From Oculina patagonica (Eukaryota), in NCBI RefSeq assembly GCF_052425735.1, contig NC_135771.1, positions 6,634,001-6,698,000 on the forward strand: DNA of 64,000 bases, given 5' to 3'. Positions 1 to 20,301 of the stretch are shown piece after piece (the first letter of the stretch is position 1; every line of letters begins with the position of its first letter). The notes under the pieces were generated by a model, which was given only the letters and a program-made list of their open reading frames with translations, was not told the origin of the DNA and searched no databases. The position numbers and the translations under genes are program-made.

Positions 1-494
1 TCATCTATGTACATTTTTAATACATAATAGGGGGATATTTTATGTATGTATTTTATGTATGCAGTCGCCAAACTTACTTCGAGCTCAAATAGTCTTTTTC
101 ATATTTTGATCTGAAATTTATTTTAAACAACAGCATGTGTAAGCATGGTTATGGCTTGTGTGTGTGCTTTATAATAATTATTGTCAACGCTGCCTTCTGT
201 TTACATGACTTGATGTAAAAACTCAAGAGAGATTTTTTTAATAGAGAATATACATAAAGGTATTTGTAGCCAGTCGAACTTTTAATATGTTCTAGCCACA
301 TGTAGTATGTCTTTCTCCTAATATTTCATTGCAAATTTTCGTTTTTTATTGTAATACCATATTTGCTGTTATCATTGTTATCACGGTTTAAACTTTATAA
401 ATATTTCAAGATTCTTTTTAAGCATTAAGCCCATGCAAAACAGTGTGTACTAAAAACCGTTGTTGTTATTGTGATTATGGTGTTCATTTCAATT

Positions 495-626
495 NNNNNN
501 NNNNNNNNNNNNNNNNNNNNNNNNNNNNNNNNNNNNNNNNNNNNNNNNNNNNNNNNNNNNNNNNNNNNNNNNNNNNNNNNNNNNNNNNNNNNNNNNNNNN
601 NNNNNNNNNNNNNNNNNNNNNNNNNN
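495..626. other. N gap (others at 16223-16376 and 60870-60998)
   Basis: Runs of N; the first two lie in the homologous simple-repeat-containing intron of R1 and R2. Confidence 0.95.
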
Positions 627-640
627 CTTTATAATGTCAG

Positions 641-3600
641 ACTCTTAGTGGAAATGGTGACAGAAACTCAGAGGTAAAGCACATTCTTAATGAAGGTGTT
701 TTAGCAAGGTATTTGCGATTTCTGCCTGAAACTCACAATGGTGGTATGTGTATGAGAACAGAAGTTTTTGGAGTAAAGCAAAAACCAGGTGATTATTTAC
801 TTGTACTACTACACTTACACATTAATAAAACATTATTTCAACGACTGCAGCCTAAGGTGCTTAGTAGCGGTTTCCGGCACGTTGCAGCTTTTAGACTTTG
901 GTGGGTGACAGTACTACCACTCTTTATAGGTTGCTGTTACACTTATGGTATCAAAGAAATGCTCATTTGTTGGTTTAACTCATTGAACACAACTGACGCA
1001 ATATATCGTTGTCCGTATCACAAGAGTTAGAGGTGACATTTTGCTAAAGAAAATCTGAGGTGAAGGGACTGCAGTACTTCCCAACAGATATTTTCTATAG
1101 AGATCATTTGGGTGTGCCCCTGAGCTCAGTGCCATTGTTAGGATATAAGGGATATATTTTATGTAAGACTTAAAAGTTAATGTTGCTTTGTTTGCAGAAA
1201 ATCTCGCTCTTGGAAGGCCTACAGCTCAGTCTTCAACATATAATAACAGTATATCAGGAAATGCAGTGGATGGCAATCCTGGACACTGTTCATATACACT
1301 GGAAGATAACCCCAGTTGGTGGCAAGTGGACCTTGGCTCACATCACGTGCCAGTCTTTGAAATAAACATAATCAACAAGTTCTCAGCATCCTCAAATATA
1401 CAGAAAATGAGCGAAGACTATAAAATAACATTAGGTGAGTATAGTAACTCTTATTAGAGTGAACTATTTTTAATATACCGTAGAATTCCGGTTATAAGCC
1501 CTGGGCTTATACAACTTCGTAAGGGGTTTTGGGTGGGCTTATAAGCGGAGGGGCTTATATCCGGGAGGGCTTATAAGCGGAATGAAAAAAACGTTTTAAA
1601 ACGAGCCACGGGTGTGTTGATGGAAATAAGTTTTTTAGTTAAAAACGGGGGGGGGGGCTTATAAGCGGGGGGGGGGGCTTAAAACCGGAATTTTACGGTA
1701 TAAGACCATGTGGTGCATGTGATAGTAAAGATTTTATATTACCATATAGTTAGCTGTAAACTGCGAATTATTCTTCAGGTTAAATAAGTGTTTCAACATG
1801 AATCTAACACTCGTACAAAGACATTTTAACAATTTAAGTTAATCAAAAAGAAATCCTAATTAATTAATTAATTGATTAATAAATTAATTAAAACTATTTC
1901 AGGTTATCCTGCAAAGGAATATAACCTACAACAATGCTTCTGAATGTTATTTTATATAATAATTTGATTGTTTTACTTTATAACATATGTCATAACTAAG
2001 ACTACAGTAACCATGTGATATAAACGTTTGCTTCAAACAGCATTGTAGATTTCGTTCCCTATACTAATTAAACCAAGTTAGTGATCAATGTGGTGGGGGC
2101 TTTAAAGACTCTTCTCTTAGTGAGTCTTTTTTTTTTTCGGGAATACTGGGGTGGGGGGCGGGGCTAAGCCCTCCCAGCCCTCACGGCTCCGCGGTCCCTG
2201 CTTTATCAGAGGGAAGGAGCAAAGTTGTTAATCTTCCCAACATTGTCCTATGCTAACTGTATGTCTCAGTTATGACAGAATGTCTGTTTTATAATATTGG
2301 CAGGTAGCTCTCCAACTGTGACAAGCAACCCTCAGTGTATGGGACTCTACAGTTTTAATCAGTTTAAAGTATCAGCTGTATGTTTCACTAATCCTCTGAA
2401 GACTGGTAGATATGTTGGTATAATCACCACAAAGAAACAATTTCTCCAGTTATGTGAGGTGGAAATTTACTCACGAGGTAAATCTCAACACATACTTACA
2501 GTAATAGCTCTGAATGATCATGACCCACTTAATAGAGTAATTGGTGCTATTGCCCTTCGAATGCACTCAAAGAACGGTATAAAGCTTTAAAAAAAGCCCT
2601 TTTCAAAACTAAAGGAAGTAATTAATTGTGTCACATCAACATCAACAATGACGTTAGCAAGCCAACATCTCCATTAAGAAAAACCAAGACCTTGATAAAG
2701 CCGATACCAATTGATCGTGTGTCGACATTAACAAGGAAAATAAGCTTTGAAAAGCCCACTTTACCCTACTGGGACATTTTAATATAACATTTTTTCCCCT
2801 TGAAGAGTGAAAGTGAATGTGCACTCTGAATATCTTTTGAATAAAGAACTTCAAGAGGTATAATTTAATTATTTTGGTCGTCACGGGGAATTCGCAGATT
2901 TTTGGTCTAAACTGTCCTGAAAGTAGTGGTAGGCAACTTAACCCATGAAAAACATTATCTTTGAAAATCAAAAGGAAATTACTTTAATTTGCGGATAGAA
3001 ATCAATCTAGGGCTATAAATATCGATTTTTTGGAAGATGCGCGGAAGCGACTTAAAACGTTAAGGCTTGATTTTTCAAATTGCAATCCATTTCCATCCGA
3101 GCCATCCGCAGCCAAAGACGCTTGTTAACAGTTTCAGTTCTGTAATATAACAATTTGCAATAAAAGTGGACCATTATTTTTAGGTTTCCTACGACACAAA
3201 TATAAATTTTGGCTGTTCAAAAATCTGTTAAAATTCGTGTCAAAGCCCCTTTAATGCAATGTCATGATGTTTCATTCAAGAAAATCTGGCATATGGCAAG
3301 GAAACAGCTCAGATTAGCACAGATCATGATGGCGTAAGTAGCCGAGCAGTGGATGGTATCAGTATAACAAACTACCTGGGAGGATCCAGCTGTACACACA
3401 CAGAACATGGAACCAAACCCTGGTGGAGAGTCGACCTGGGACAAGTTGAGCCTGTTTCTGAAGTGTACATAGTCAACAGAGGAGATGGTTGGCCAGAAAG
3501 ATTATATAAGTTTGAGATCAGAGTGGGTAGGCTAATTCATAGCATAATTTCTGATACCACCATTCATATAGATCTTATTACAAATGCCAATCAGTTCTTC

Positions 3601-6600
3601 TTGAGAGTAATTTTTACATGTAAAGAAATAATAACTTGCTTTGTATTCTGCATTTCTTGTAGGTTCAGCAAACAGTGGTGGGGGTGTGACCAACCCTAAG
3701 TGTGGTGGGACTTATGGAGTTCCTGCAGGAAAAGGTTTATCTTTCTTCTGCCGTCCCCCTTTGTATGGAAGATATGTGACAATCAGAAGTTTACTAAATA
3801 TTGCATTGACAGTCTGTGAAGTTGAAGTATATTCTGAAAAACGAGGTATGATAATAATGTTATTTTTTTATTTATTCCATCAAATATATGTAAAGACTGT
3901 ACACTGTACGTGATGCGAAGATGAAAATTAATCACATCATGGATATGATTGTGAAGCTATTTGCTGGTACATGCAGGTAAGTCATACAGGTTCGTTCCTT
4001 GGTAGAAGGACATTTTCAGGATCCTTTTTCTGAGTATGCTGTGACAGTGACTGAAAAATCGTCATTGTCATCTCTATTCACTATGCAGGCTTTAAAAAAC
4101 AGACCATCACATTTTCATCACTGTGCATATGCCACCCATCAATATTCAAACCATAGCAGTATGCAAGATGTTTGTTATTAATCTGCATTTAGTTCAATGG
4201 CCTAACCTAACTCAAGTCTCTGTAGCTCACTTGTAGATCATCCAGACTAGTTATCATCAGGTCATAGGCTTGGCTACTGTTGGAAAAAAAAAATCATAAA
4301 CCGTGTTTCAGGGTATACCTGCGTCGCTACATGGAAGATCATAGTAATCAAAATACAATAACAGGGGGGGGGGGGGGGGGGGCAAGAAAGTCGGCACTTT
4401 TTTTGGATACAGGATGTGAGTCAATATCAATCAAGCCGTTGCTATGAAAGACGTCACCAAAAGTTTTGTTTTCTCAGAAAGATTTAAATATCAATGACTG
4501 CATGCGTGTGAAATGCGAATAGTGGCGGTGTTTGCGTTTGATGTTTCACGCCACTGATTTCTCAGCTCATGTTTCACGTCACTGAGAATGTTTTGGCGGC
4601 GTGGAATACCAAGCGAAAAATTGGTCACGGTTGACATTTAACAACCAAAAAATGGTAAATCATTTCAGAATCATTGGAGTTATTTTTAATTCGTATAATT
4701 CACAAGTCCTACTTTTGCCAGAATGGACACCGATATCACCGTTTGTTGTTGTGATGTCCGGCAAACTTCAAAAGAACAAGCAAAATGCAAATAGCTATTG
4801 CGTTTTGTGCACGGTCAAGACCAAGACATGCGAACTAGACAATGACTTTGTCAAGCTATTGACTGTGCCCTTAGCAACCGTTCGATAGCTACTGAACACA
4901 TTCGGTTGCCCGGCACCGCTATGTCCCCTTTTTCAGTCGTGTAACAAAGGGAGTTTCTCCCCCCCCCCCCCCTGTACAATAATAATAATTATAAAAGAAG
5001 AAAGAATGAATAGCATGCAACTGGTGTGCACTGGCCATCTGTGCATTTACTTTTCTTTATTTTAAAAAATCATAAAATTGAAATTTCTATATATTATTTT
5101 CTTGAGTTTAAACCAGCATTGTTAACAACTTCGTATTGTTGCTGAATGTAGTATGGCAAGTTTATTTCTGAACCCTGTTTACTATTGGTCATTCCAAGGT
5201 TGCGCAGGGAACTGGGGCGAGTTTTTAATTTAAAGCAATCGATAATCTGACACTACCACATGAAAGAACCCGGTGAGATTGTTCATTTGACTACGTTTGA
5301 TGCTTTTAGGATGAACAGAGACGACGTTATGGGCCTTGAAACATGGTGAAAAATCCATACAAACGTCTCTTATTATGAGACAGCGTCCCGAAAACCGTAT
5401 AAACTCTATTTTTTAATGCATTTCTGGTATACTCTTCAAAATGGGCAAACATAGTGATTTTCATCTTAGTTTCTTTCAAATAATGGATCTTTGGCAGGAT
5501 TTTACAGCTGAAACAAAACGAAAAAAAAGTTTTAAGAGTTTATATGGTTTTGGGGGACGCTGGCTCACAATAAGAGACGTTTGTATGGAATTTTATCCAC
5601 GCTTCAAGGTCCACAACTTCGTTTCTGTTCATTCTGAAAGCATCAAACTTAATCAAATGACCAATCTCACCATGATCTTTAATTTGGTGGTGTCGGATTA
5701 TCGGAACGGCCAATTGTTGCATAATTTGAGAATGTCACACTCACCATAATCTTGCTTGTGAATTTGGGAGGCCGGGTAGTGTGTTTGGATTTTTAATAGA
5801 TCCCGGCAGTTTCAAGCCCTGGATATTCTTGTTGAAATGAGTAATGACAATAATAAATAATAATTTTGCTCTTTATCCACTGCTCCTGATCGAACTGGAA
5901 TTTATATATAATATATCATTCAATTTATTTTTTCCTGGTTCACTTACATGTGCTGTAGTATTAGGCTGGGCCATTGATGCGGTGATAGAAGAGTGTTTAC
6001 TTTTGATTTTATTTCAAGCATGCCAAATTCAGGCTCTTGGTGTGACCAGCAGGGATGTATTTCCAGACAGCAGCTTCTCAGCCTCATCAACAAATGGTAG
6101 TAACGCTGCTTCTAAAGGTCGGCTGAATAAAGTTGGTGCTTGGTCACCCAGTAATGACAGCAATCCTAATGACTATCTTCAAATCAACCTCGAATACGAG
6201 TTCTTTATTTGTGCTGTAGCTACTCAAGGAAAGTCAAATGCTGATCACTGGACAACAAAGTACAAGTTACTTTTATCACTTAACAATGTTGACTGGGTCA
6301 CCTACCAAGAAAACAGTGCTGATAAGGTTCGTTGAAAATACATTAACACAATGCCATGTCTTTCTCATAACTATGAGTACCCAAGCCAAAGTGTTCAAGG
6401 ATGCATGTAGCTGCTGAGAGTGGTATATTTAACAATTATTCTACGAGCGCAAAATGGATATGAGATGGTAGATAGGCAACGAGACGCGTAGCGCCGAGTT
6501 AGCTTTAACGATCTCATATCCAACAAGGGCGAGTGGAATAATTGTTTTATTATAAACGCCCAAAAAATTGCAAAATTTCGTTGACGCGTATCGGCTACTA

Positions 6601-9600
6601 AATTTGTGATGAATTGAATATGAGCTCATATACCATTGCCAGTTAACCAATCAAAACGCAGGAATTGCGATATGCCATTGCTAGTTTTTAATAAAGTCTA
6701 GTAGACACTGCAAGTTCAATTATGATGACAATGGTGCTACAGGGAACCTGAGTGTCTTGACATGACTGGGACTTTCTAAGACTGACTGTGGATGTGGTAA
6801 TCGCTGTTGCAGTGACTAACAGTTATACAGACTCTGCATGGCTCAGCTGTAACTGTGACTTCGTCTGCGACTTTCGCTGAGCAGGTGTAAAGCTTTTTAG
6901 CTTTTTGTTTCTTAAAAAACAAACTCCCCCCACCCCCTTGAATCTGTCTTTGGATTGTAACATATGATGAACATTGATAAAAAAAAATATGTATGAACTA
7001 CAGTTAAACCTCCTCTAATGGATACCTACCATAGGCAGACACCTCCTGTATGCAGGCAATTAGCTATGGCCTCATCTCCCCTTAATGGACACCTTTTCTG
7101 AAAGGCCACTTTTTTTAGGTCCCAGCGGTGCTTACGGGATGTTTAACTGTGTTAACTTATATTGCAGGTCTTCAGTGGTAATTCTGGAAGAAATGACGTA
7201 GTTAAACACAATCTTAAAGAAATTGCAAGAGCACGGTTTATCCGGTTTCAGCCAACAAATTACTCAACTCACAAAGCTCTTAGAGTCGAAGTGTTCGGAA
7301 TTCTAAAGCCCGCAGGTATCTTGCTTCCTTTCACTGTTATCGTTCACATATGCTATTGTGTGCGTGGTAAATCAGTCGTAAAAGTGTCCTGTGACAAACA
7401 AAATGTAAAAGTACATGTAGGTATATATCTTTCAAACATACCTTACATTGGACAGAGGTGTTAACTTGCTTGTTCATTTTTTTATAGCTCCAAGCCAAGC
7501 ACCTGGTAGCTTTTCCGTGACTCCACTGTCTTCCACAAGTGTTAGAGCGACCTGGCAGTTACCACAGACAGGCTCCAGACATGAAGTAATTACAGGGTTT
7601 AAACTTTTGTACGGAAGAAAGGGCTCTGCTGCAGATTCACTAACTATTTTAACCATTGAAAATAATTCCACTTTTACCAGAGATGTCACTGGATTGCGAA
7701 AATGCACAGAATATGAATTCCAAGTGTTAACTTTCACATATGTTGGAAATGGTCCGAAAAGCTCTGTTCAGCCAGTTACAACATTTGGTAAGGTGTCAAA
7801 GATAGCTGTCTAAAACGTTTTAAAGCAACTTAAAGTAAATCAACAATTTATGGAATTTCTTATTAACCGAACTTCACAATTAAGCCTAAGCTTCAATAAA
7901 TGAAGCTCCCAGTTTCACATACTTCAGCAAAAAAATGGTCGCAATATGTTAATATTTCAGGACATAACGTCTATAACAAAACAATTATTCCACTCGCCCT
8001 TTTTGGGTATTTTTATCATAATCAAAATCATAATCAAAGTGTTAGCGTATACATAGGCCAGAACCGCGGGTGGTATACCCTAATATTCATGACGAGGTAA
8101 AAAGTGAGAAGGTATATACCTTAAAATAGAGTTCTGTTATTAATTTGAAATTAATGGGTTTTGATTCCCATCGGGACTCAGATTTTGTCTTTGTCCCATG
8201 CTCGTATCATTGTTGAACAATTCATCCCCACTATTTATCACCGAACTTAAAATTTATCATCCTTATTATTATTTTACTACACACTTGATGATCTCAGAAT
8301 TGGTGATCCTGGCAGTATGCAAGACGCGTTTCACATATCAACCTAGTAATTATAAATAGCCCAGCTTGTCACAAATCTCTCGTAGCTCAGTTGGGTAGAG
8401 CGTCCAACCGGTATCTTGGAGGCCATGTTTTCGATTCCCGTCAGAGACTCAATTTTTTTTCTTTGTCCCATGCTCGTGTTATTGTTGAACAATTCATCTT
8501 TATTATTTATCACCGAGCGTAAAATTTTCAGATGTTGCTATGAAAAATAAATTTAAACCTGCACTCCTTAACTCTCTAGGGGAACAGGGATGTCACAATG
8601 GGGAGAGCGCTCGCCTCCCACCATTGTGGCCCTGGTTCGATTCCCGGACCTAGCGACATATGTGGGTTGATTTTCCGTTAGTTCTCATCCTTGCCCCTAG
8701 GATTTTTCTCCGGGTTCTCCGGTTTTTCTCTCTCCTGAAAAACCAAACTCTAATTCGATTTGTATTGGGAACCCGCGTAAAAACCAGCTAGGGCTGATGT
8801 GGCTTCCTCTCTATATATAGTAATTATTTTTTTTATTTCCTTATTTTATCTCTCTAAGGTACATGTAAGCCTGTCACCAGAGACCTACCAGAAAGAACTA
8901 TTTTTGCGGTTGGTGAACTAGCAATCCTAACATGTGAGGTCAGTGGATATCCAGAGCCCTCTGTCACATGGATTAAAGATGGAGACACTAACATACCGCG
9001 AGCTCAGTTTAGGAATAATGGACACATTCTTGTTATTCAAGATGTTCGTCCTCTTGACAGTGGCGTTTATGAATGCAAAGCATCAAACAAGCTTGGAGAA
9101 GGCCGTACATCTACAACATTGATAGTCGCTGGTAAGTTGCACTGGCGGCAGTATATGGACTTGACAAGTATTGAGATTTAATTCAATGTTGAAAATCTAA
9201 GTAAAGCTAACCCTAGACTTGCTTACAAAGTGTAAGTAAGCCAAGTGCTTTCCATCCTAGAGACGTGAAGATTGTTCTGTTCAAGCTTAGCGTTCTTGCT
9301 TATAAGTTTTAAACAAAAATGTAATTACTATTTGGTTTTTTAACTCAAGTTGAATGTCGTATCATTTATTAATAACTTCCTTACGTTATTTCAACCATGC
9401 ATTGGGACGTTGCATATTTTTGTTAACAATCTAAAATTCTAAACTCATTAAGGAGTTTATGTGTACATTATTTAAAACATACTGCCGGGGGGGGGCCCAC
9501 CCCACCCGGACGACACACAAGAACAATGAACATATTGTAGCCTATTTTTTGGGGGGGAGGGGGAGGGGTGTCAATCAATTGTTACAATTTAATTTATAGT

Positions 9601-11005
9601 AAATATTAGTAACAGCTTTCACACATGTAAGTAGGTTTGATCGTTCTCTCTTTCTGCAGAGCCACCTATAATAATTGAAGACATTTCCCCACCCTCAGTG
9701 ACATGCGAAAGGCAAGCTATTTGTTCTCTCTCTTGCCACGCAACAAGTGATACACCGTTTAATTTCTCTTGGACAAAGGATGGTCAGGTTCCAGTAGGTG
9801 ATGACATCCAAATCATTAACAACAGCATTGTTCTCACGCCTCAAAGTGAAAAAGATTATGGAGTGTATGTATGCCATGCTTCAAACAGCTTTGGTTCGAC
9901 AGCTTACAAAATTACCCTGTCAGAAGGCCATAAGTGTTCAACAACTACAGATACGATAAAAGGAGATAATAGTAAGTATTGTCAATATATCACATTATTT
10001 GTATGTAGGTGCTAAATAGAGACTGGTTTTCAATAACCAGAAGCACGACCAGGACTGAGTTGCAGCCGGACGTGTCACAAAATCCTCGACTATTTATTTA
10101 TATTTATTTATATTTATAACAACTTTATTACAATTAAAAGGAGAAAATAATAATAATAATAATATTGCAAAAGGGTGTCGGCAGGGAGGAACCCAATCTT
10201 GATATAGAGCCGACCCCCTAAAGAAAAAACACAAAATAAAGTAATAGTAGCATATATAATATATAATATTTATATATAAAGAAAAGTGTTTTACCGGAAG
10301 TTTAGACTGTCTTCGACGCAGGTTAGCACGACCCTGCTACGACTCTATGAACTGAATGGAGTATGACTGGATAGACTGGCATCGTCATTACGATAGAAAT
10401 GTAACGATGATGACAAGTACTTGGTATTTTGATGTTCTTTGTAAAACCTTAGGATTGGAGGTGTGAGTCTATTTTCTTTCCATCAGTTGAGGCATATATG
10501 TGTCGTCTAATGTAGAAAAAGTAATTTGTCACCTCATCGAGTAACTTAGGCCTGACGAACAAGGAAATAATTTGCTTTGAAGCTTTTTAACCTTTTAAAT
10601 ACCTGTTATTCTTTTTTGACAGATGTTAACAGCATTTTAAATGCCACGGTCATCGCTTTGTCCTGCTTTGTTTTTGTGTTGCTTGTTGTAGTCGGCGTGT
10701 TGATATGGCGTCTAAGACGAGCGGTGTCCAACAACAGAACAATGACTATAGATAAGGCCATCACCCATGACATTGTTAAACCTGACTTGCCACGTGATCA
10801 GCACGTGTCAGAACCAGATTCATATATGGAACTCCGCCTCAGGCCTTCGGAAGGGCAGTCGTTTCCGCCTCCTGATTTCAAGAGTGTACACGACACCAAC
10901 CAGAATCCTGGATACTACAATATGGAATTTAACAAAGAAAACATTGGAAACGCAAATGAAGAAACTTACGAGGAAATAAAGAATGTAACCCCAAAGGGCA
11001 TGTAA
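641..11005 (+). CDS. Receptor paralog R1 (5' end upstream of window): [F5/8C]-FTL-FTL-F5/8C-FN3-Ig-Ig-TM-Tyr tail
   Basis: Exons 641-788 (F5/8C-1b), 1198-1434+2304-2477 (FTL1), 3281-3526+3663-3845 (FTL2), 6019-6326+7168-7315 (F5/8C-2), 7488-7787 (FN3), 8859-9131 (Ig1), 9660-9971 (Ig2), 10623-11005 (TM+tail). All introns GT-AG; 2712 nt in frame. Motifs: ENLA..AVDG..C.HT..PWW.VDLG..LCEVEVY (FTL); YLQINL..AVATQG (F5/8C); W.KDG..D.G.Y.C (Ig); TM VIALSCFVFVLLVVVGVLIW followed by RLRR. Confidence 0.88.
1478..1698. mobile_element. MITE, CCGTA termini, TA-flanked (Tc1/mariner-pogo superfamily-like)
   Basis: TIR ccgtagaattccggttataagccc / gggcttaaaaccggaattttacgg; internal gggcttata repeats. Confidence 0.8.
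4362..4974. mobile_element. Non-autonomous hAT-like element
   Basis: CAGGGG..CCCCTG termini; 8-bp TSD TACAATAA at 4354-4361 and 4975-4982. Confidence 0.8.
5190..5750. mobile_element. MITE with long imperfect inverted repeats
   Basis: About 5240-5408 is the imperfect reverse complement of about 5535-5703; outer boundaries approximate. Confidence 0.6.
6428..6695 (+). mobile_element. Hairpin-headed interspersed element A
   Basis: Palindrome aacaattatt..ggatatgagat..GCGTAGC..atctcatatcc..aataattgtt; partial related copy at about 7977-8090. Confidence 0.6.
7001..7149. mobile_element. Short Tc1/mariner-like MITE
   Basis: ta-CAGTTAAAC..GTTTAACTG; ends 18 nt before the exon acceptor at 7168. Confidence 0.6.
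8154..8525 (+). repeat. Two tandem units of a tRNA-like repeat
   Basis: A-box-like gtagctcagttggg, B-box-like ttcgattcc, shared tail ctttgtcccatgctcgt..ttgttgaacaattcatc; same family as 40620-40806. Confidence 0.6.
8579..8849 (+). mobile_element. tRNA-derived SINE inserted in the Ig1 splice acceptor of R1
   Basis: B-box GGTTCGATTCCC, T-rich tail, 7-bp TSD CTCTCTA (8572-8578, 8850-8856); absent in R2 and R3. Confidence 0.8.
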
Positions 11006-12369: not shown

Positions 12370-15300
12370 ATGTCGGAGCTCGATCGGAAGCTATATTTCC
12401 GGGTGGCTTTCCTCGCTTTACTTCTTCCTTTAGCTTCAGGTGAGCCCAGTATTATTCTTAATCTATTTATAAGTTTAAGTGTGTCGGATAAAGCGACTGA
12501 AGTTTGTTTAGACGCGCGCTCTTTGCGATGAAAGAGAACATTACACAGTACTTCACAAAGGGAGATGATGCAATTAAATGAAAAGGAACCTCACAGCCAA
12601 GAACACATCAGTTTTGTAGTTTCTGTAGATCACAGGTTTCTGAAATCGTGGCATTAGTCAGTTACAGCTTATATGCTTGAGTCTCAAAAGAGTGTTGCTT
12701 GTGACTAAAAACGGCGTACCTTAAGATTTGCAGATGCAAAGTAGTGGAAATTGCACAACTGACATCAAAGAGGAGGCTGTCTCTTAATGAAAACAACTTA
12801 AAACGTTACATGGTCAGGCCCAGCGAAAAATCAACTTAGAACTGTGCTAAATTATGTTCAATTGAAAGCGTTTAACGATCGCACTGGTATGTCTGGTTCT
12901 ATTTATATAGTCGCAACTTTTTCATTATTTTCATTGAAAGTGCAGTCAGATGTACCAAAATATAAATATATGACTGTTCACGCACTACAGAAAAAAGTGA
13001 CATTACTGCTATTTTAAAGCATCGTAACCAACAATAACAACATAACTGAAGCAAACATTGTGTTGTAGTTATACACGAGTCATGATGCAATATTCCTGAA
13101 CTTTGCTTCCGTGCAGTTATCTTGCTTATGATCGGTAGTCAAAAGAAAAGTTGCAAGGTTTCTCGGTGTGTGTGTGTATTTTTTAATTTATCCTAGTTGG
13201 AGAGAGAAGCATTTTTCGGAATTTTGCTTACATAGTACCTAAAGACCCGATGACCGTTCTGAATGAGTTGGGCAGAAAAAGCACGATCAAAATTTAACAC
13301 ATAGAGTTTATAAGAACTGATTTAAAGCTAAATATCTGCCAGTGTAAAGCCCGAGGAAAACACGCAAGCTCGATTGGTTAAAAACGCTAGGCGAGGAATT
13401 TTCACGATATTGCATTCCTTTGTTTGTTCATACCTTTTCAGATGATTTTTAAGTAATTTAAAGAAAACCTTCATTATAAGAAATGTAATTGTAGGACGAA
13501 AGTTCTTGTTCTTCGGAGCTTTAAACTTAGCGTGCGTGCGGAAATGCAAGGAGAGAAATGGAATTGCTGCCAAATTTAACCTTTTTGTCAAGTTTTGTGA
13601 TCAGTGCGATATCGATGTTTCTCTTGAAATGTTAAGTGGAATTTGCAAGGGAACCATATTGTGAAATAAGGCCATGATATCAAGCCACGAAATTTGATCA
13701 AATAAACCGGTTTGCTTATGGCAGGTATTCAGTTTTTTGCAGGTTGCAATGTGTTAAACTTGAAGGGGTGACAGGCTCGCAAAATCTCTACCGTCGAAAA
13801 CCTTTTGAAAACCTCTTATATTTTGGCTTTAACGAGCAAATCTTCTAAGAATTTTCCTTTATTATTAGAAATAATTGGTGTTTATTCGAGATGAAGTTGA
13901 ATGAACCCCAATATAAAGGCTAACCTTTAGGGTTAGCTAATTTTGGCTACCTGGAGTGCTATTCAGGCTAACCGAAGTGCTAAGTAGACACGAAAGTCGA
14001 TTTTTCAACCCGCAATTAAGCAACCTGTAAAAAAATACCTGCCCGTTTGCTTGGGTCTTTAATTTACAATGTATCGTTTTCAGTTTGTTGGTATTCCAGT
14101 AGACTTTCCCAAAGTCCATAGATCGCTTCTGGCGCTTCTGGCTCTCATCCATTTATTCGAGATCGAGTTGGAGGAAGTCTAGTATTCTAGACGCTCTTTC
14201 AAACAACCACTTGTCTCATAAATGAAAGTAAATGCTCGTGAATGTTGCAAGCAATGCTTGGAATGAACAAATTCATGAGTGTCGTGTTTTTTTTTCTCAC
14301 GTTTTGCTACAAATCAAATCAATGGAACTCAGTTTGATGGAAAATGCTCTTTTTTCGGTTTAGAGTGTTTTGTGAACTTTGCAGAGTTTTTTGTTTGGTT
14401 TTTATGAATCCAGTTTTCTGGATTCATAACAATGATTCTGCAAGAGCACAACAGAGATTTCGGCAGAAAAACAAAGGACACTTAATATCTATAATTTCCG
14501 CTTCTGCAGTGACCGAAGGAGTTAGGACAAAGTGTGAACCAGCGAGCCATATGAGCCAGAAATCCCAAAGTCCTAATAAAAGACTAACCGCATGTTACTT
14601 AAGCTAACCAAAAATAACATGGAAACTGCGGTGATAAACATTACGGACACCGCAGTTTGCGTGTTATTTTTGGTTTAACTACGATGGCCAAAGAAAAAGA
14701 GTATTTACCTAAACTAACTGTACGCTAACCAGAGTGCTGTTTAAACTAACCGGAGTGCTATATCGGCTAGCCAATAATTATTAAGGATAACCGGAATTAC
14801 GTTCCTGCAGTTCGCCTGAGGTACGAAATACAAGTTTACGTCTTTTGTGACGACCAAGAACTTTACTGCAGGTCCCATACTGTACGGAATTAATTTTGTT
14901 CATCATTCGCAAAGATTACTTTCGACATAAAGGTTAAAAACTGCCATATTTCGTATCTTTAATTCCTTTTGTTTCCGGTCATGTGTCCGCTACTTGCAGA
15001 AGAAATCGAGAAGTACAAGAACAAGTTCAAAAGTAGCCAGGGTTGACACAAAATGTATGTCTGTTATTAAAGCTTAAAATTTGAAGTGTATTACTGTGAT
15101 GAAAATTGAAGCATCAGGCATTAATGAAGGCATAATAGTGTTATTTTAGTTAACAACAAAACGGTATTTTTTAAAAAGTCATTTTTGCCTTCCTTCGTCC
15201 TTTTAGCCTTGTTTTCTTTCTTCTTTCGTTCGGTCGGTCGGTTGTTCCTTTGTTTATTCCTTTGTTTTTCAATTTATTCCTTATGGCAGGAGGTTGCATA

Positions 15301-18300
15301 AATTTGGATCTTGGAATGGAAAGAGGATCAATTCCGGACAGTAAAATAACTACTTCATCTGTACAAAGTGCCAACACACCAGCCAAGAATGGTCGACTAA
15401 ACTTTGCATCAGGATTATCATGGTGTGCAGGAACAAGTTACACTAATCCATATCTACAGATTGATCTACAAACACTTCATATCATCTGTGCTGTGTCCAC
15501 TCAAGGGAATTCCCAAGCTGATCAGTGGGTGACAAACTACACACTACAGTCATCCACAGATGGGTCAACTTGGAAAAATTATACAGAAATTGGAGAAATT
15601 AAGGTAACAAGTAATACGCGCTATACTATTATATATATTTTTTTCTCAACCTCGGAATTGCATTTCTAGCTTCTGATTGTCCTGATCCCGGTACCAGCGA
15701 ACCAGTGACCAAGTGAAATGAGTGCGGAGTCCCCGGGGACCCAAGAATGGGACGAGGGAGGTGAACAAGACGGGACACCGTGACGCAAAAAGGAGAAACT
15801 GACGAACACGAGGAGTGAAGAAGCAGCGACGGATGACACGTCTGTCGCCGACCTCCGGTCCCTTCGGGCCCGCGACGGCGCGCCGCACAGACAGAGGGCG
15901 CGCCGCCCCGGCAGGACCGCCCCGCCCACCCACCAGGGCAGGACCGCGGGAACGAGCGCGGCGCCTCGGGCACCCCGCGCGGGCAGAAATTGTTAAATAA
16001 TTTTTTCATTAGAAAATGTATGATGTTACCCCATCATGAGGCCACGCTATTACAGCTCCAGCTGTAAAAATAATTTCATTTTTTCAAATTGTAATTCCCC
16101 ATTTATTTATTATGTTATTGTTATCTAGGCTATAACTTTTTAAATAGATCGTGAATGCATTTAGGTAATGCAGCGCAATTAACTTTGTACTTAGAATTGT
16201 TGTTGTGGATTATGATGATGATNNNNNNNNNNNNNNNNNNNNNNNNNNNNNNNNNNNNNNNNNNNNNNNNNNNNNNNNNNNNNNNNNNNNNNNNNNNNNN
16301 NNNNNNNNNNNNNNNNNNNNNNNNNNNNNNNNNNNNNNNNNNNNNNNNNNNNNNNNNNNNNNNNNNNNNNNNNNNNAGCTCAGGTTTAATAAATGTTTGA
16401 TTCCCCCAAAACTGTCTCTCATCTCGCATCTTGTTGTAAAATTATTATGCACACCATTTTGTATATAATTATTTTAATGCTCTCTTTTTAATTTTTAGAC
16501 TCTTAAAGGAAATAGTGATAAAAACTCAGAGGTTAAGCACATTCTTCATGAAGTTGTTTTAGCGAGGTATTTGCGGTTTCTACCTAAAAGTCACCATGGT
16601 GGTGTGTGTTTGAGAACAGAGGTGTTTGGAGTGAAGCAAAAACCAGGTAATTATTACTTGTCATACTTAAATACAGCTTCAACATATTACAATTCGACAT
16701 TATTTTTTAACGACCATTTTATTCACTGGATGTAGAATAGTGGTAGTCTTAAAGAGATCTTTGTTTTTCAACAAATGTAAAGCGATATCCGTGCAGTAGC
16801 AGTCTTGCAAGGGGGGATTTATTGCAGATCTCAGGTGTTGCTGTGAAAAATGAATTTAAACCTGCTCTCTCCGGCTCTCCTTTAGGTAAGCCTGTCGCCA
16901 AAGACCTACCAAAAAGAACAATTTTTGCGGTTGGTGAACTAGCAATCCTTACATGTGACATTAGTGGAGATCCAGAACCTTCTGTCACATGGAGTAAAGA
17001 TGGAGACACTAACATACCACGAGCTCAGTTTAGGTATAATAGACACATTCTTGTCATTGAAGATGTCCTTCATGTTGACAGTGGCGTTTATGAATGCAAA
17101 GCATCAAACAAGTTTGGAGAAAGCCGTACATCTACAACATTGATAGTCGCTGGTAAGTTGCACTGGCTGCAGTGTGACTAGATAAGTATTATTACTGGAA
17201 GGCGGGGGAGGAGGGAGAAGGAGCGAAATTACTGTCAGTCGTCACCGCCCCCTGCGCGTCGAGATGTCGGCGATGCGAGCGAGCTGAAGCCAATCCCACA
17301 CTGTGTGATACCTGAACGAGCTGATCGATGGATGCTGCAGGGAGGGCGGTAGACATTCAGGTGAGTGTCACTGACGATCGTCTGGCGTTGGTGGTGCCCC
17401 CCGTCGACTGATGGGCACCAGAGAGGGACCGCACTCCCGCCACCCCGCCCACTGCGCGAGGAGACTCCAAGCCAAGAAGAGGGCCGCGACCAGAAAGTCA
17501 GACTGGACACAGACGACGACAGGATCAGGCGCCCGGACCCCGCCGGAGAAAAAACGCCTATCGCAGGTAAGTATTGATAAGATATGCTTGATTGATATAA
17601 TTTTATTTAATTATTGATATAATTTGATTGACAAAATTTTTTTTATTTATTTATATAATTTAGTTATTTTCACGAGAGACTATTTCTCGAGGCCTGGCAT
17701 TCGCAGACGACGGGGGGAGAATTCGGATGTTTAAATCCCTCGCGTGATCACGCGCAGGGTCGTATTTTTGATGGCGTAGCACGCGCAGAACTGTAAACCG
17801 TTGAAAGCCGTTGACCAAAGTTATTGGTCGAAACGTCTTTAAAGTTTTGATTAACGTTGTTTTAGTGTTAGCACAAGTCAGTGGCGCGCAAGCACAAATT
17901 TTGTATTATGAGTATTACAATACAAACAAGTATGAGTATTACAATATAAACAAAGACGTTTTTTGTTCACAAAAATAGATTGATAAAATTTAATTCGTGG
18001 AAAATGATCTTTAAAAATATATCTGACTTATGAGTGCACTCTTTTCCCACAGTGCCACCTGTTATAATTGAAGACATTTCTCCACCTTCAGTGACATGTG
18101 AAAGGCAAACCCTTTGTTCTCTTTCTTGCCATGCAACCAGTGGTACTACGTTTAATTACTCTTGGACAAAGAATGGTCAGGTTCCAGTTAGTGATAATAT
18201 CACAATCATGAACAATAGCCTTGTTCTCACGCCTCGTGATGCAATGGATTATGGGGTGTATATATGCCATGCTACAAATAGCTTTGGTTCCACAGCTTAC

Positions 18301-19548
18301 AACATCACGCTTTCCGAAAGTCAGAAATCTTCAACATGTGCAGATACGATAAAGGGAGATGACAGTGAGTGTCGTTAACTTGTGTAGATGATAAATAAAG
18401 ACTGTTTTCCAAAAACCACAAGCACAACCAGGTTACGAAAAAAGGCTCCGATTATTCAAAAGGGGTATAAGGCTATCTACAAGAAAGATCATTACCTGGT
18501 GGTATATGTAACAAAACCACTACGGTATTCAATCGATCGTTAATTATCTGGTGCAAAGTGTTACCGATTCTTCGGACATCCAGGACAAGAAAATGAGTAA
18601 AAACCAAAGGAGGCCAAACAGCTTTTCTCTTGACCTCTTGTGCTTATGCATATATTGTTGTTGTTGTTGTTCTATTAGTAGGACGTGTATGACTTAAGTA
18701 TATGAATAATGCACTGAACTATTAAAGTTGCTCCCTTGAATTTTTCAAGAGTACATCTTCCTGAATTTGAACTGTCAGGGCTCCATCACGCTTGCTCCTT
18801 CATCCATTTTGATGACGACTGAATGAACTTTTCAAAACAAGTGGGCTTAGTGACATCAGCGTTGCCATAGCAATACAGCGGATGACGCCATGTATTTTGT
18901 ACATTAGTAAGAAAACACTTAAAATACTTCGGATCGGAACTGCAAGTCTATTTGCTTTCCATCAACAAAGGCACATGGTAATTGTTTAGCTCACCCAGCA
19001 ACTATGGCTTAACGAACAAATTAATTTACTTTGAAGCTTTTAATAATGTTTTCACTATCTGTTATTATTCCTTTTTGGCAGATGCAAACAGCATCATCAC
19101 TTTATCCTTCATCATGTTCGTGTCGCTTGTTGTAAATGGCGTGTTAATATGGCGGCTTAGACGAGCTGTCCGTGACAACAGAACAACGACTGAAGACAAG
19201 GCCATCACGGATGACATTGGTCAACCTGGCGTGTCAGAGCCAAGTTTATATATGGAAATCCGTCCCAGGCCTTCGGAAGGGCGGCCACGTGTACCTTCTG
19301 AGTGTAGGAGTCTTCAGGAAGCCAACAACAATCCTGAATGTTACAATGTGGGAGGCAATGGAAACGAACTTGACTTATCACGTGATCAGCAACTATCTTC
19401 GAAGGAGCAGTCACGTGAACCTCTTGAGGACAAAAGTCCACTGGGAACAAAAGAGAACCCTGGATGTTACAATGTGGGATTTAACAAAGGAAACAGCGGA
19501 AACGAACACGGAGAAATTTCCGATGAAGTTTACATTGCAATGAAATAG
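12370..19548 (+). CDS. Receptor paralog R2, short form: SP-F5/8C-Ig-Ig-TM-tail (525 aa), Tyr-depleted tail
   Basis: Exons 12370-12439 (MSELDRKLYFRVAFLALLLPLASG), 15290-15603, 16499-16646, 16886-17152, 18053-18364, 19082-19548; 1578 nt, open frame. Most exon lengths match R1/R3/R4. Could also be a decaying copy. Confidence 0.85.
15607..16011. other. R2-specific intronic insertion with GC-rich core
   Basis: The homologous R3 intron (25021 onward) lacks it; similarity resumes at about 16013; core 15680-15985 is very GC/CpG-rich. Confidence 0.6.
17191..17567. mobile_element. GC-rich 377-bp insertion with 8-bp direct repeats and no TIR
   Basis: TAAGTATT at 17183-17190 and 17568-17575; R1 and R3 have a single AAGTATT at this intron site. 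Confidence 0.55.
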
Positions 19549-20301
19549 GAAATTCCCAAGGTTGAGTTGTTTCGTTTTATCTTACTATTTTTGTCATTTT
19601 ACTGTGACACCTAAGATATTTTTGAGGTACATTGGTCGGTACCTCATGAGCGACCTTCTCTTTTTTCCCCCAAAAAAACGTACCACATGACGTATGCTTG
19701 TGACTGTGGTGGATGTCATGGGCTGTTTAGAATAGTACTAATAGAAAATGTTTAGAAAATATATATCTGAACCATAGAAGATTAAAAAACGTATCTATGT
19801 TGAATAGAAAATAGAATAGAATAGAATATTTCTAGATAATATATGTAGGCTATATGTGAATGCAAAAACATGTAAGTAGATCATAGAACTGAATAATTTT
19901 ATTTGCAGATAATATAGGTAATATTGTATTCCTAGGACATTTGTGGTTAATGAAATGTTATAAGATCATAAAAAGTATTTAATAACAATAATAGTTATAA
20001 TAATAAAAATAATAAAAATAATAATAATAATAAAAATAGTAATAACATTAAAATAATAATGGTTTATTAACCGGTTGTCCATTTACGTGGCTCTTCGCCT
20101 GTTAACTTACACAGAAGTGACAGTATGAAATATTTTCCCATTTTTTTAAATTGTTATTGCAAGGTTAGCAAGCAAAACCTGAATGCCACAGCCTTTTTAG
20201 AAAAGTACTTGTAGAAATGTTGAGGCGATTTAGAGTATGTAATTGTAAACAATAGCATGTGAGTAGATCATAGAGCTGAATAATTGTGGATAATAAAATA
20301 C

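Follow-up and report, generated by a model that had tools for sequence, protein, structure and literature searches.

In the cnidarian Hydractinia, the Alr receptors are encoded by a tandem array of single-pass immunoglobulin superfamily (IgSF) genes. The tyrosine motifs of their cytoplasmic tails vary among paralogues, which may carry an immunoreceptor tyrosine-based activation motif (ITAM), an immunoreceptor tyrosine-based inhibitory motif (ITIM) or neither, and some copies are truncated or pseudogenes (Huene et al. 2022, PMC9546547). The vertebrate KIR, LILR, SIRP and CEACAM families and fester/uncle fester of Botryllus are likewise linked paralogues with related ectodomains and differing tail tyrosine content, and decoy copies or copies of opposite sign have arisen in these paired families through a few point mutations or frameshifts in the tail exon. 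Here, we analyzed a stretch of 64,000 nucleotides from the stony coral Oculina patagonica (GCF_052425735.1, contig NC_135771.1, positions 6,634,001 to 6,698,000 of the forward strand; hereafter the window), in which repeat families, blastn and tblastn revealed four paralogous receptor genes, R1 to R4, in tandem on the plus strand. The second gene, R2, is not a dead copy, being intact, transcribed and spliced, and its cytoplasmic tail has lost the core putative docking tyrosines of its family.

The coral locus resembles the Alr complex in its tandem organization, in the variation of tail tyrosine motifs among paralogues, and in the presence of some truncated or pseudogene copies. The likeness does not extend to demonstrated sequence homology, as the coral receptors combine an F5/8 type C (F5/8C, discoidin) domain with I-set Ig domains, and the longer copies add FN3 and further lectin-type domains. 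In addition, the coral tails repeat a cassette of 39 amino acids that falls short of a strict ITAM, and the locus is known from its sequence and not from allorecognition genetics. The few tail-exon changes by which R2 differs from the adjacent R3 recall the vertebrate and Botryllus families. Classical pairs, however, have near-identical ectodomains, and their activating member has a short tail and a charged transmembrane (TM) residue by which an ITAM adaptor is recruited. R2, in contrast, has a long tail and no charged TM residue, and since some 13 kb of R3, holding internal ectodomain exons, have no counterpart in it, it hardly qualifies as a classical paired receptor.

Tyrosine losses in the R2 tail

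The tails of R2 and R3 had no match in Pfam. A word-indexed search with them returned eight proteins, 64 matching clusters were found among 1.84 billion representatives, and phmmer gave tail-family matches down to E=4e-42. All matches with a checked species came from stony corals (Stylophora, Pocillopora, Montipora, Desmophyllum and Oculina), and the proteins are automatically named 'sidekick-2-like', 'Neuropilin-1', PTPRF-like or 'uncharacterized'. Among JGI metagenome contigs, 175 pattern matches to R2 were obtained and none was confirmed as a relative. The literature search yielded no description of a coral tyrosine-cassette receptor family, the nearest being the Hydractinia Alr paper.

The tails of this family share a fixed order, in which a TM helix ending in IWRLRRA is followed by one to three 39-amino-acid cassettes and an acidic end, ...EEIYDEVGNAQS. 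The cassette consensus is SEPxxY1MELxPRPSEGQSxxxPEY2xSLQxxxxxxxY3Y4NV, and a hidden Markov model built on it collected 99 cassettes, 94 of them unique, including both cassettes of R2. Outside R2, the tyrosine is conserved at Y1 in 82 of 86 cassettes (95%), at Y2 in 81 of 86 (94%), at Y3 in 77 of 82 (94%) and at Y4, the least conserved, in 70 of 81 (86%). The position +2 of Y3 is an Asn in 74/76 cassettes, and +3 is Val in 57/60 and Ile in the other 3/60. The near-invariant Asn resembles the Grb2-type pYxN site known from SH2 specificities, and the C-terminal YDEV/YEEI resembles the Src-SH2 class. By motif only, YYNV is thus similar to the Grb2/Shc-type pYxN site (pYVNV), and IYDEV of the family C-terminus and TYEEI of R1 are similar to the pYEEI class. 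The cassette tyrosines may be regarded as putative phosphorylated docking sites, and R2 has lost the tyrosine in the pYxN register in both cassettes as well as the acidic C-terminal context.

The comparison of the R2 tail exon (19082..19548) with that of R3 (41974..42506), which has two complete cassettes and whose tail is contained in RNA runs, revealed 4 tyrosines in the R2 tail and 10 in the R3 tail. This agrees with the original prediction, and all six R2 changes that it had listed were present. In cassette 1, Y2 is replaced by Cys at 19303..19305 (SEYTSL to SECRSL, TGT for the TAT of R3) and Y3 by Cys at 19339..19341 (GYYNV to ECYNV, TAT to TGT). In cassette 2, Y2 is replaced by Asp at 19429..19431 (PEYKNL to LEDKSP, GAC for the TAC of R3) and Y3 by Cys at 19465..19467 (RYYNV to GCYNV, TAT to TGT). 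An in-frame deletion of 21 nt (19393..19399, junction near 19396/19397) removes YMEVYPR and with it Y1 of cassette 2. Finally, a net insertion of 5 nt at 19534..19538, also seen in contigs of the RNA runs X1, X2 and X5, shifts the frame so that the acidic C-terminal IYDEIGNAQS becomes VYIAMK-stop. Two further R2-specific in-frame deletions were found that the earlier list did not hold, one of 18 nt (DLPRDQ, junction about 19228) and one of 15 nt (GIFNA, junction about 19092) just outside the membrane. R2 keeps Y4 twice and Y1 once, and its tail has one YMEI and two CYNV beside the new YIAMK end.

The four point losses coincide precisely with Y2 (YxSL) and Y3 (YYNV) of both cassettes. Joint absence of these two tyrosines was confined to R2, with 2/2 cassettes as against 0/80 elsewhere in the family (p=0.0003). 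R2 has the IWRLRRA end of the TM helix and the cassette backbone of the family, but the defining Y2 and Y3 are replaced. Other members of the family include XP_022783168.1 of Stylophora pistillata (P0031, 'sidekick-2-like'), which at 534 aa is about as short as R2, PFX30133.1 of the same species (P0068, 'Neuropilin-1') and LOC144638288 of O. patagonica (P0001), encoded on the same chromosome outside the window. All three share with R2 the membrane-proximal Ig-Ig-TM arrangement and the cassette backbone; unlike R2, they keep Y1 to Y4 and the acidic C-terminal tyrosine. R2 was the sole member seen without Y2 and Y3 in every cassette.

The changes were polarized with P0001, at the protein level only, together with the family majority, leaving out the alignment columns that follow the frameshift. 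Derived features common to R2 and R3 set these two apart from the other members (the linker GNG.ELDLSRDQQL, SKEQSRE and TTTEDKA), indicating that they are sisters and that P0001 lies outside them. Since P0001 and about 80 family cassettes have a tyrosine at the sites in question, the state of R2 is derived. The cytoplasmic tail has accumulated 17 derived replacements in R2 and 8 in R3, and all tyrosine losses and all four indels fall on the R2 branch. Polarization by R1 alone was dropped, as it is misleading for the TM region, where R2 shares states with P0001.

An intact and transcribed gene

R2 (12370 to 19548, plus strand) was modeled with six exons. All of its introns have GT..AG ends, and the intact open reading frame (ORF) of 1578 nt encodes 525 aa arranged as signal peptide, F5/8C domain, two Ig domains, TM helix and tail. 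The spliced product is identical to the public entry P0087 ('hypothetical protein ACROYT_G043236 [Oculina patagonica]'), which maps to CM126648.1 of GCA_052425735.1. The ectodomain frame is intact, as the original prediction had stated. Exon 1 (12370..12439) holds the start codon and the signal peptide MSELDRKLYFRVAFLALLLPLAS and ends at a GT donor. Exon 2 (15290..15603) encodes the first part of the N-terminal F5/8C domain (PF00754, E=2e-14) and exon 3 (16499..16646) its end, as placed by Pfam. Exon 4 (16886..17152) encodes an I-set Ig domain (PF07679, E=3e-19) and exon 5 (18053..18364) the second Ig domain (Ig_3, E=7e-12). Exon 6 contains the TM helix (about 19090-19152) and a cytoplasmic tail of 131 aa with two degenerate tyrosine cassettes, ending with the stop codon at 19546-19548.

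Expression was assessed from Logan contigs of the RNA runs X1, X2 and X5, which are labelled as three different organisms. In all three the R2 exons were covered, including exon 6, and the introns were at zero depth. GT..AG joints were seen at 16646^16886, 17152^18053 and 18364^19082, the last in three runs, and a loose contig end joins exon 2 to exon 3. The RNA contigs differed from the R2 tail by 0-3 positions per piece over 19199-19510 and by at most 9 where they reached the 3' untranslated region. No contig of the three runs had an indel in the coding part of the tail. As the tail is reproduced in this way, X1, X2 and X5 must all carry the R2 deletions, the insertion and the Cys and Asp codons. 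An assembly error as the source of the tail changes was excluded by contigs with no difference over 19199-19393 and 19479-19625. The tails of R2 and R3 were both present in run X1 and in runs of the same studies. Of the marks of a pseudogene, i.e., a broken frame, absence of expression and a ratio of nonsynonymous to synonymous divergence (omega) near 1 throughout, none was found in R2.

Some contigs evidently came from relatives of R2. One X1 minority contig is R3-like at 19337 (G), 19340 (A) and 19363 (C), and therefore reflects cross-mapping between paralogues. A loose end of X1 at 19496 continues into ...NS-RKKPE, the tail of P0001, which is thus also transcribed. The P0001 tail keeps all cassette tyrosines, shares the TM residues LSF and FVSLVV with R2, and possibly is the tail that R4 lacks in the window. 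In one low-depth X2 contig, 80 nt of the tail exon (19167-19248) were skipped between GT..TT ends, which is not a canonical intron; this probably is a paralogue or an assembly artefact.

Selection on R2 and rival explanations

The R2 ectodomain is under purifying selection. The pairwise omega between R2 and R3 was 0.38, and the R2 branch carried 19 nonsynonymous (N) and 13 synonymous (S) ectodomain changes (p=0.02 against neutrality). The outcome named earlier as a refutation, a lack of expression or a ratio near 1 throughout, was thus not obtained. For the whole tail, the pairwise omega was 0.81, and for the TM and juxtamembrane part it was 0.33. The ratio in the cassettes was higher, 11.5N:0.5S (omega ~6.8) in cassette 1 and 14N:2S (omega ~1.7) in cassette 2 with the C-terminus. 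Taken jointly this amounts to 25.5N:2.5S, with a borderline omega of ~2.8 (p=0.04-0.12 for a nonsynonymous excess). The synonymous divergence between the cassettes of R2 and R3 (19230-19533 and 42155-42490) was only 2.5 differences per 63 sites, with 15-19% mismatch in the flanks. This suggests a gene-conversion tract that is restricted to the cassettes and was followed by fast amino-acid change.

Tyrosines were lost more often than the tail-wide rate would predict, a comparison that the original prediction had proposed as a check. On the R2 branch, 4 of 8 tyrosines were replaced and 13 of 115 other residues (Fisher p=0.013; 0.024 with the ambiguous sites). A neutral simulation with the substitution spectrum of non-coding R2-R3 DNA (3506 sites, 14.7% mismatch) gave a probability of 0.025 for the loss of at least four of eight tyrosines when the branches were equal, and of 0.07 when 70% of the divergence was placed on R2. 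The neutral probability that all four Y2/Y3 sites were lost was 0.0006-0.002. An A to G mutation bias at TAT was considered as the source of the three Tyr to Cys changes and rejected, as TAT became TGT (R3 to R2) at only 6/63 non-coding sites and at 3/5 tyrosine TAT codons.

The reading frame was also kept. Non-coding R2-R3 alignments contained 132 indels in 3.5 kb, of which 10 were multiples of three. At this rate, the R2 branch should have accumulated 6-8 frameshifts over the initial 449 nt of its tail exon; none was seen (P=0.0004-0.002), and all three R2 deletions in the exon are in frame. Shallow RNA variants in the R2 tail were 6N:5S among the variants listed. Three X5 variants (19533, 19536 and 19539) lie 3 nt apart and are all synonymous in the YIAMK frame, which hints at constraint on the new C-terminus. 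Wholesale neutral decay is unlikely because of the tyrosine-loss excess, the kept frame and the cassette omega of ~2.8. Each test is modest, and in combination they favor remodelling under selection over plain decay.

Several points weigh against this. All of the selection tests were post hoc, chosen after the pattern had been seen, and none is decisive alone. The R2 tail branch as a whole, with 18N:4S and an omega of ~1.3, did not differ significantly from 1 (p=0.45), nor did it differ significantly from the R3 tail (p=0.11) or the R2 ectodomain (p=0.14). The non-coding indel rate, being derived from blastn, is probably inflated, and a conventional indel-to-substitution ratio raises the probability of no frameshift to ~0.05. 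The RNA variants could be contaminated by paralogues, since R3-like and P0001-like contigs were seen, and the three RNA 'organisms' may be very closely related or even one and the same species. Furthermore, much of the R2 ectodomain is gone as well, which fits a gene heading to decay. A serious rival, although on balance an unlikely one, is relaxed constraint, by which R2 lost its signalling role after the internal ectodomain deletion and the tail has since been drifting in neutral decay, its frame not yet broken. In addition to the tail-branch ratio, the absence from R2 of what lies at 26344-39589 in R3 fits this explanation, as do the presence of four indels in the tail and of none in exon 3 and both Ig exons, the part of the ectodomain that was compared, and a number of derived tail replacements about twice that of R3. 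If 70-100% of the divergence fell on R2, the chance of losing at least four of eight tyrosines would rise to 0.07-0.19. Drift accounts less well for three in-frame deletions with no frameshift or stop upstream of the final few codons (P=0.0004-0.05) and for tyrosine changes exactly at the four Y2/Y3 sites (P ~0.001), and it does not by itself produce the cassette omega. The shallow variants and the synonymous changes in the YIAMK codons also speak against it, as do the transcription and splicing of R2 in three runs and its constrained ectodomain. The original prediction had itself named neutral decay as a caveat.

The original prediction had also asked whether R2 is a paired inhibitory or decoy receptor. 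In the ITIM form of this reading, R2 would be paired with an ITAM-like R3, and phosphorylated SLYMEI (19243..19260) would recruit a phosphatase of the SHP/SHIP type and counter R3. According to the published definitions of ITIM, [SIVL]xYxx[ILV], and ITAM (PMC9546547), SLYMEI indeed is an ITIM-consensus match, the only one in R2, and it contains the retained Y1 of cassette 1, which is the only strongly conserved tyrosine kept while the putative activating ones are gone. The two genes are adjacent and found in the same RNA run, and homologues of SHP, SHIP, Syk and Shark are reported from the cnidarian Hydractinia (PMC9546547). However, SLYMEI arose through one G to S change at -2 of the family-wide YMEL motif, and the consensus is loose. 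Across family members, it is matched by 10/78 Y1 and 23/88 Y2 sites, among them sites in both cassettes of the fully tyrosine-bearing P0001 and, as had already been conceded, SEYTSL of R3. With 13-26% of family sites fitting, the match in R2 lies within normal family variation, and as R2 gained SLYMEI and lost SEYTSL of R3, the count is one against one. The term ITAM-like proved loose as well. The arrangement YxSL-x8-YYNV is present, but YTSL-x8-YYNV and YKNL-x8-YYNV of R3 have Val and not Leu or Ile at +3 and do not fit the strict Yxx[L/I]-x(6-9)-Yxx[L/I], and the spacing of 14 between YMEL and YTSL of R3 is outside it too. The ectodomains of R2 and R3 also are not equivalent. We therefore find a gain of inhibitory polarity unsupported by the sequence and the ITIM reading improbable. 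Still less probable is that the R2 tail differences are not independent mutations and were copied by gene conversion from an unseen tyrosine-poor paralogue. The patchy and low synonymous divergence of the cassettes, next to the 15-19% mismatch of the flanks, would suit it, and so would the TM residues, which match P0001 and not R3. The search with the R2 tail, however, gave only tyrosine-complete relatives and thus no tyrosine-poor donor, and the Tyr to Cys sites are single-base differences in sequence otherwise identical to R3.

We lean towards the explanation, which we hold to be somewhat probable, that R2 is a functional paralogue with attenuated or rewired signalling. On this view, R2 is an expressed, domain-reduced copy among coral-specific receptors encoded in tandem. 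The ectodomains of these receptors are assembled from F5/8C, FN3 and Ig modules, and their putative phosphotyrosine-docking tail has one to three cassettes and an acidic EIYDEV end. After the split from R3, the tail of R2 would have been remodelled with the reading frame kept, so that both cassettes are now without Y2 and Y3, the second also without Y1, and the C-terminus has lost its acidic context. R2 presumably reaches the membrane and displays the N-terminal discoidin domain and two membrane-proximal Ig domains, and it could not recruit the SH2 effectors that dock on YxSL/YYNV in its relatives. It may thus bind ligand without giving the usual signal, e.g., as a ligand competitor or decoy, or as a modulating partner of the full-length copies. 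A changed signalling output of R2 is likely given an intact and expressed gene, a constrained ectodomain, a derived and targeted tyrosine loss and the kept frame. The earlier claim that signalling polarity was rewired by selection is thus partly supported, in that the tyrosine loss is derived and non-random and the frame is kept; the inhibitory polarity finds no support. A stronger version, in which positive selection removed the YxSL/YYNV tyrosines and made R2 a dominant-negative or inhibitory partner of the neighbouring full-length lectin-Ig receptors, we consider rather doubtful.

The receptor array and its meaning

The window is animal DNA with a G+C content of ~38%. Besides R2, blastn and tblastn placed R1 at about 1 to 11005, R3 at about 23016 to 42506 and R4 from about 47600 past the window end, all on the plus strand; the R4 tail therefore lies outside the window. 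The tail exon of R1 (10623..11005) has a single cassette (YMEL, FKSV, YYNM and YEEI) and served as an outgroup. R2 is collinear with the neighbouring R3, apart from the internal ectodomain exons that only R3 has, and the exons common to both have ~68-85% protein identity.

Two public models on CM126648.1 around 6636370-6663548 (window ~2370-29548) differ from this layout. One fuses R1 to a reverse-transcriptase/endonuclease ORF (2205 aa), the other is a read-through of 2315 aa from R1 to R3, and both are probably mis-joined. On the minus strand of the R2 introns, the stretches 15629-16009 and 17235-17510 are G+C-rich with long ORFs rich in Arg, Gly and Pro, and probably are a repeat or mobile element. 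Two ectodomain exons also stood out in the comparison of R2 and R3. The first discoidin exon (15290-15603 in R2, 24709-25020 in R3) had a dS of 0.09, a dN of 0.08 and an omega of 0.88, while the other ectodomain exons had 0.16-0.40; this could be due to conversion and diversifying change in a putative ligand-binding domain. In the second Ig exon of R3 (40945-41253), the R3 branch had 17N and 12S and the R2 branch 5:5, R3 being the faster copy.

To our knowledge, a receptor system in which activating signals are set against non-activating ones has not been described in corals, and few of the genes behind coral recognition of self, non-self and symbionts have been identified. The locus offers a natural experiment, in which a coral-only family with a highly conserved tyrosine cassette stands beside an expressed, in-frame paralogue without its best-conserved tyrosines. 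The tails of R2 and R3 are a concrete pair for finding the binding partners of the cassette. At present this appears to be one lineage-specific case with borderline statistics. If positive selection did remove the tyrosines, stony corals would have evolved a paired-receptor logic independently of vertebrates, Botryllus and Hydractinia, and the locus would be a candidate for the tuning of non-self, microbe or symbiont recognition.

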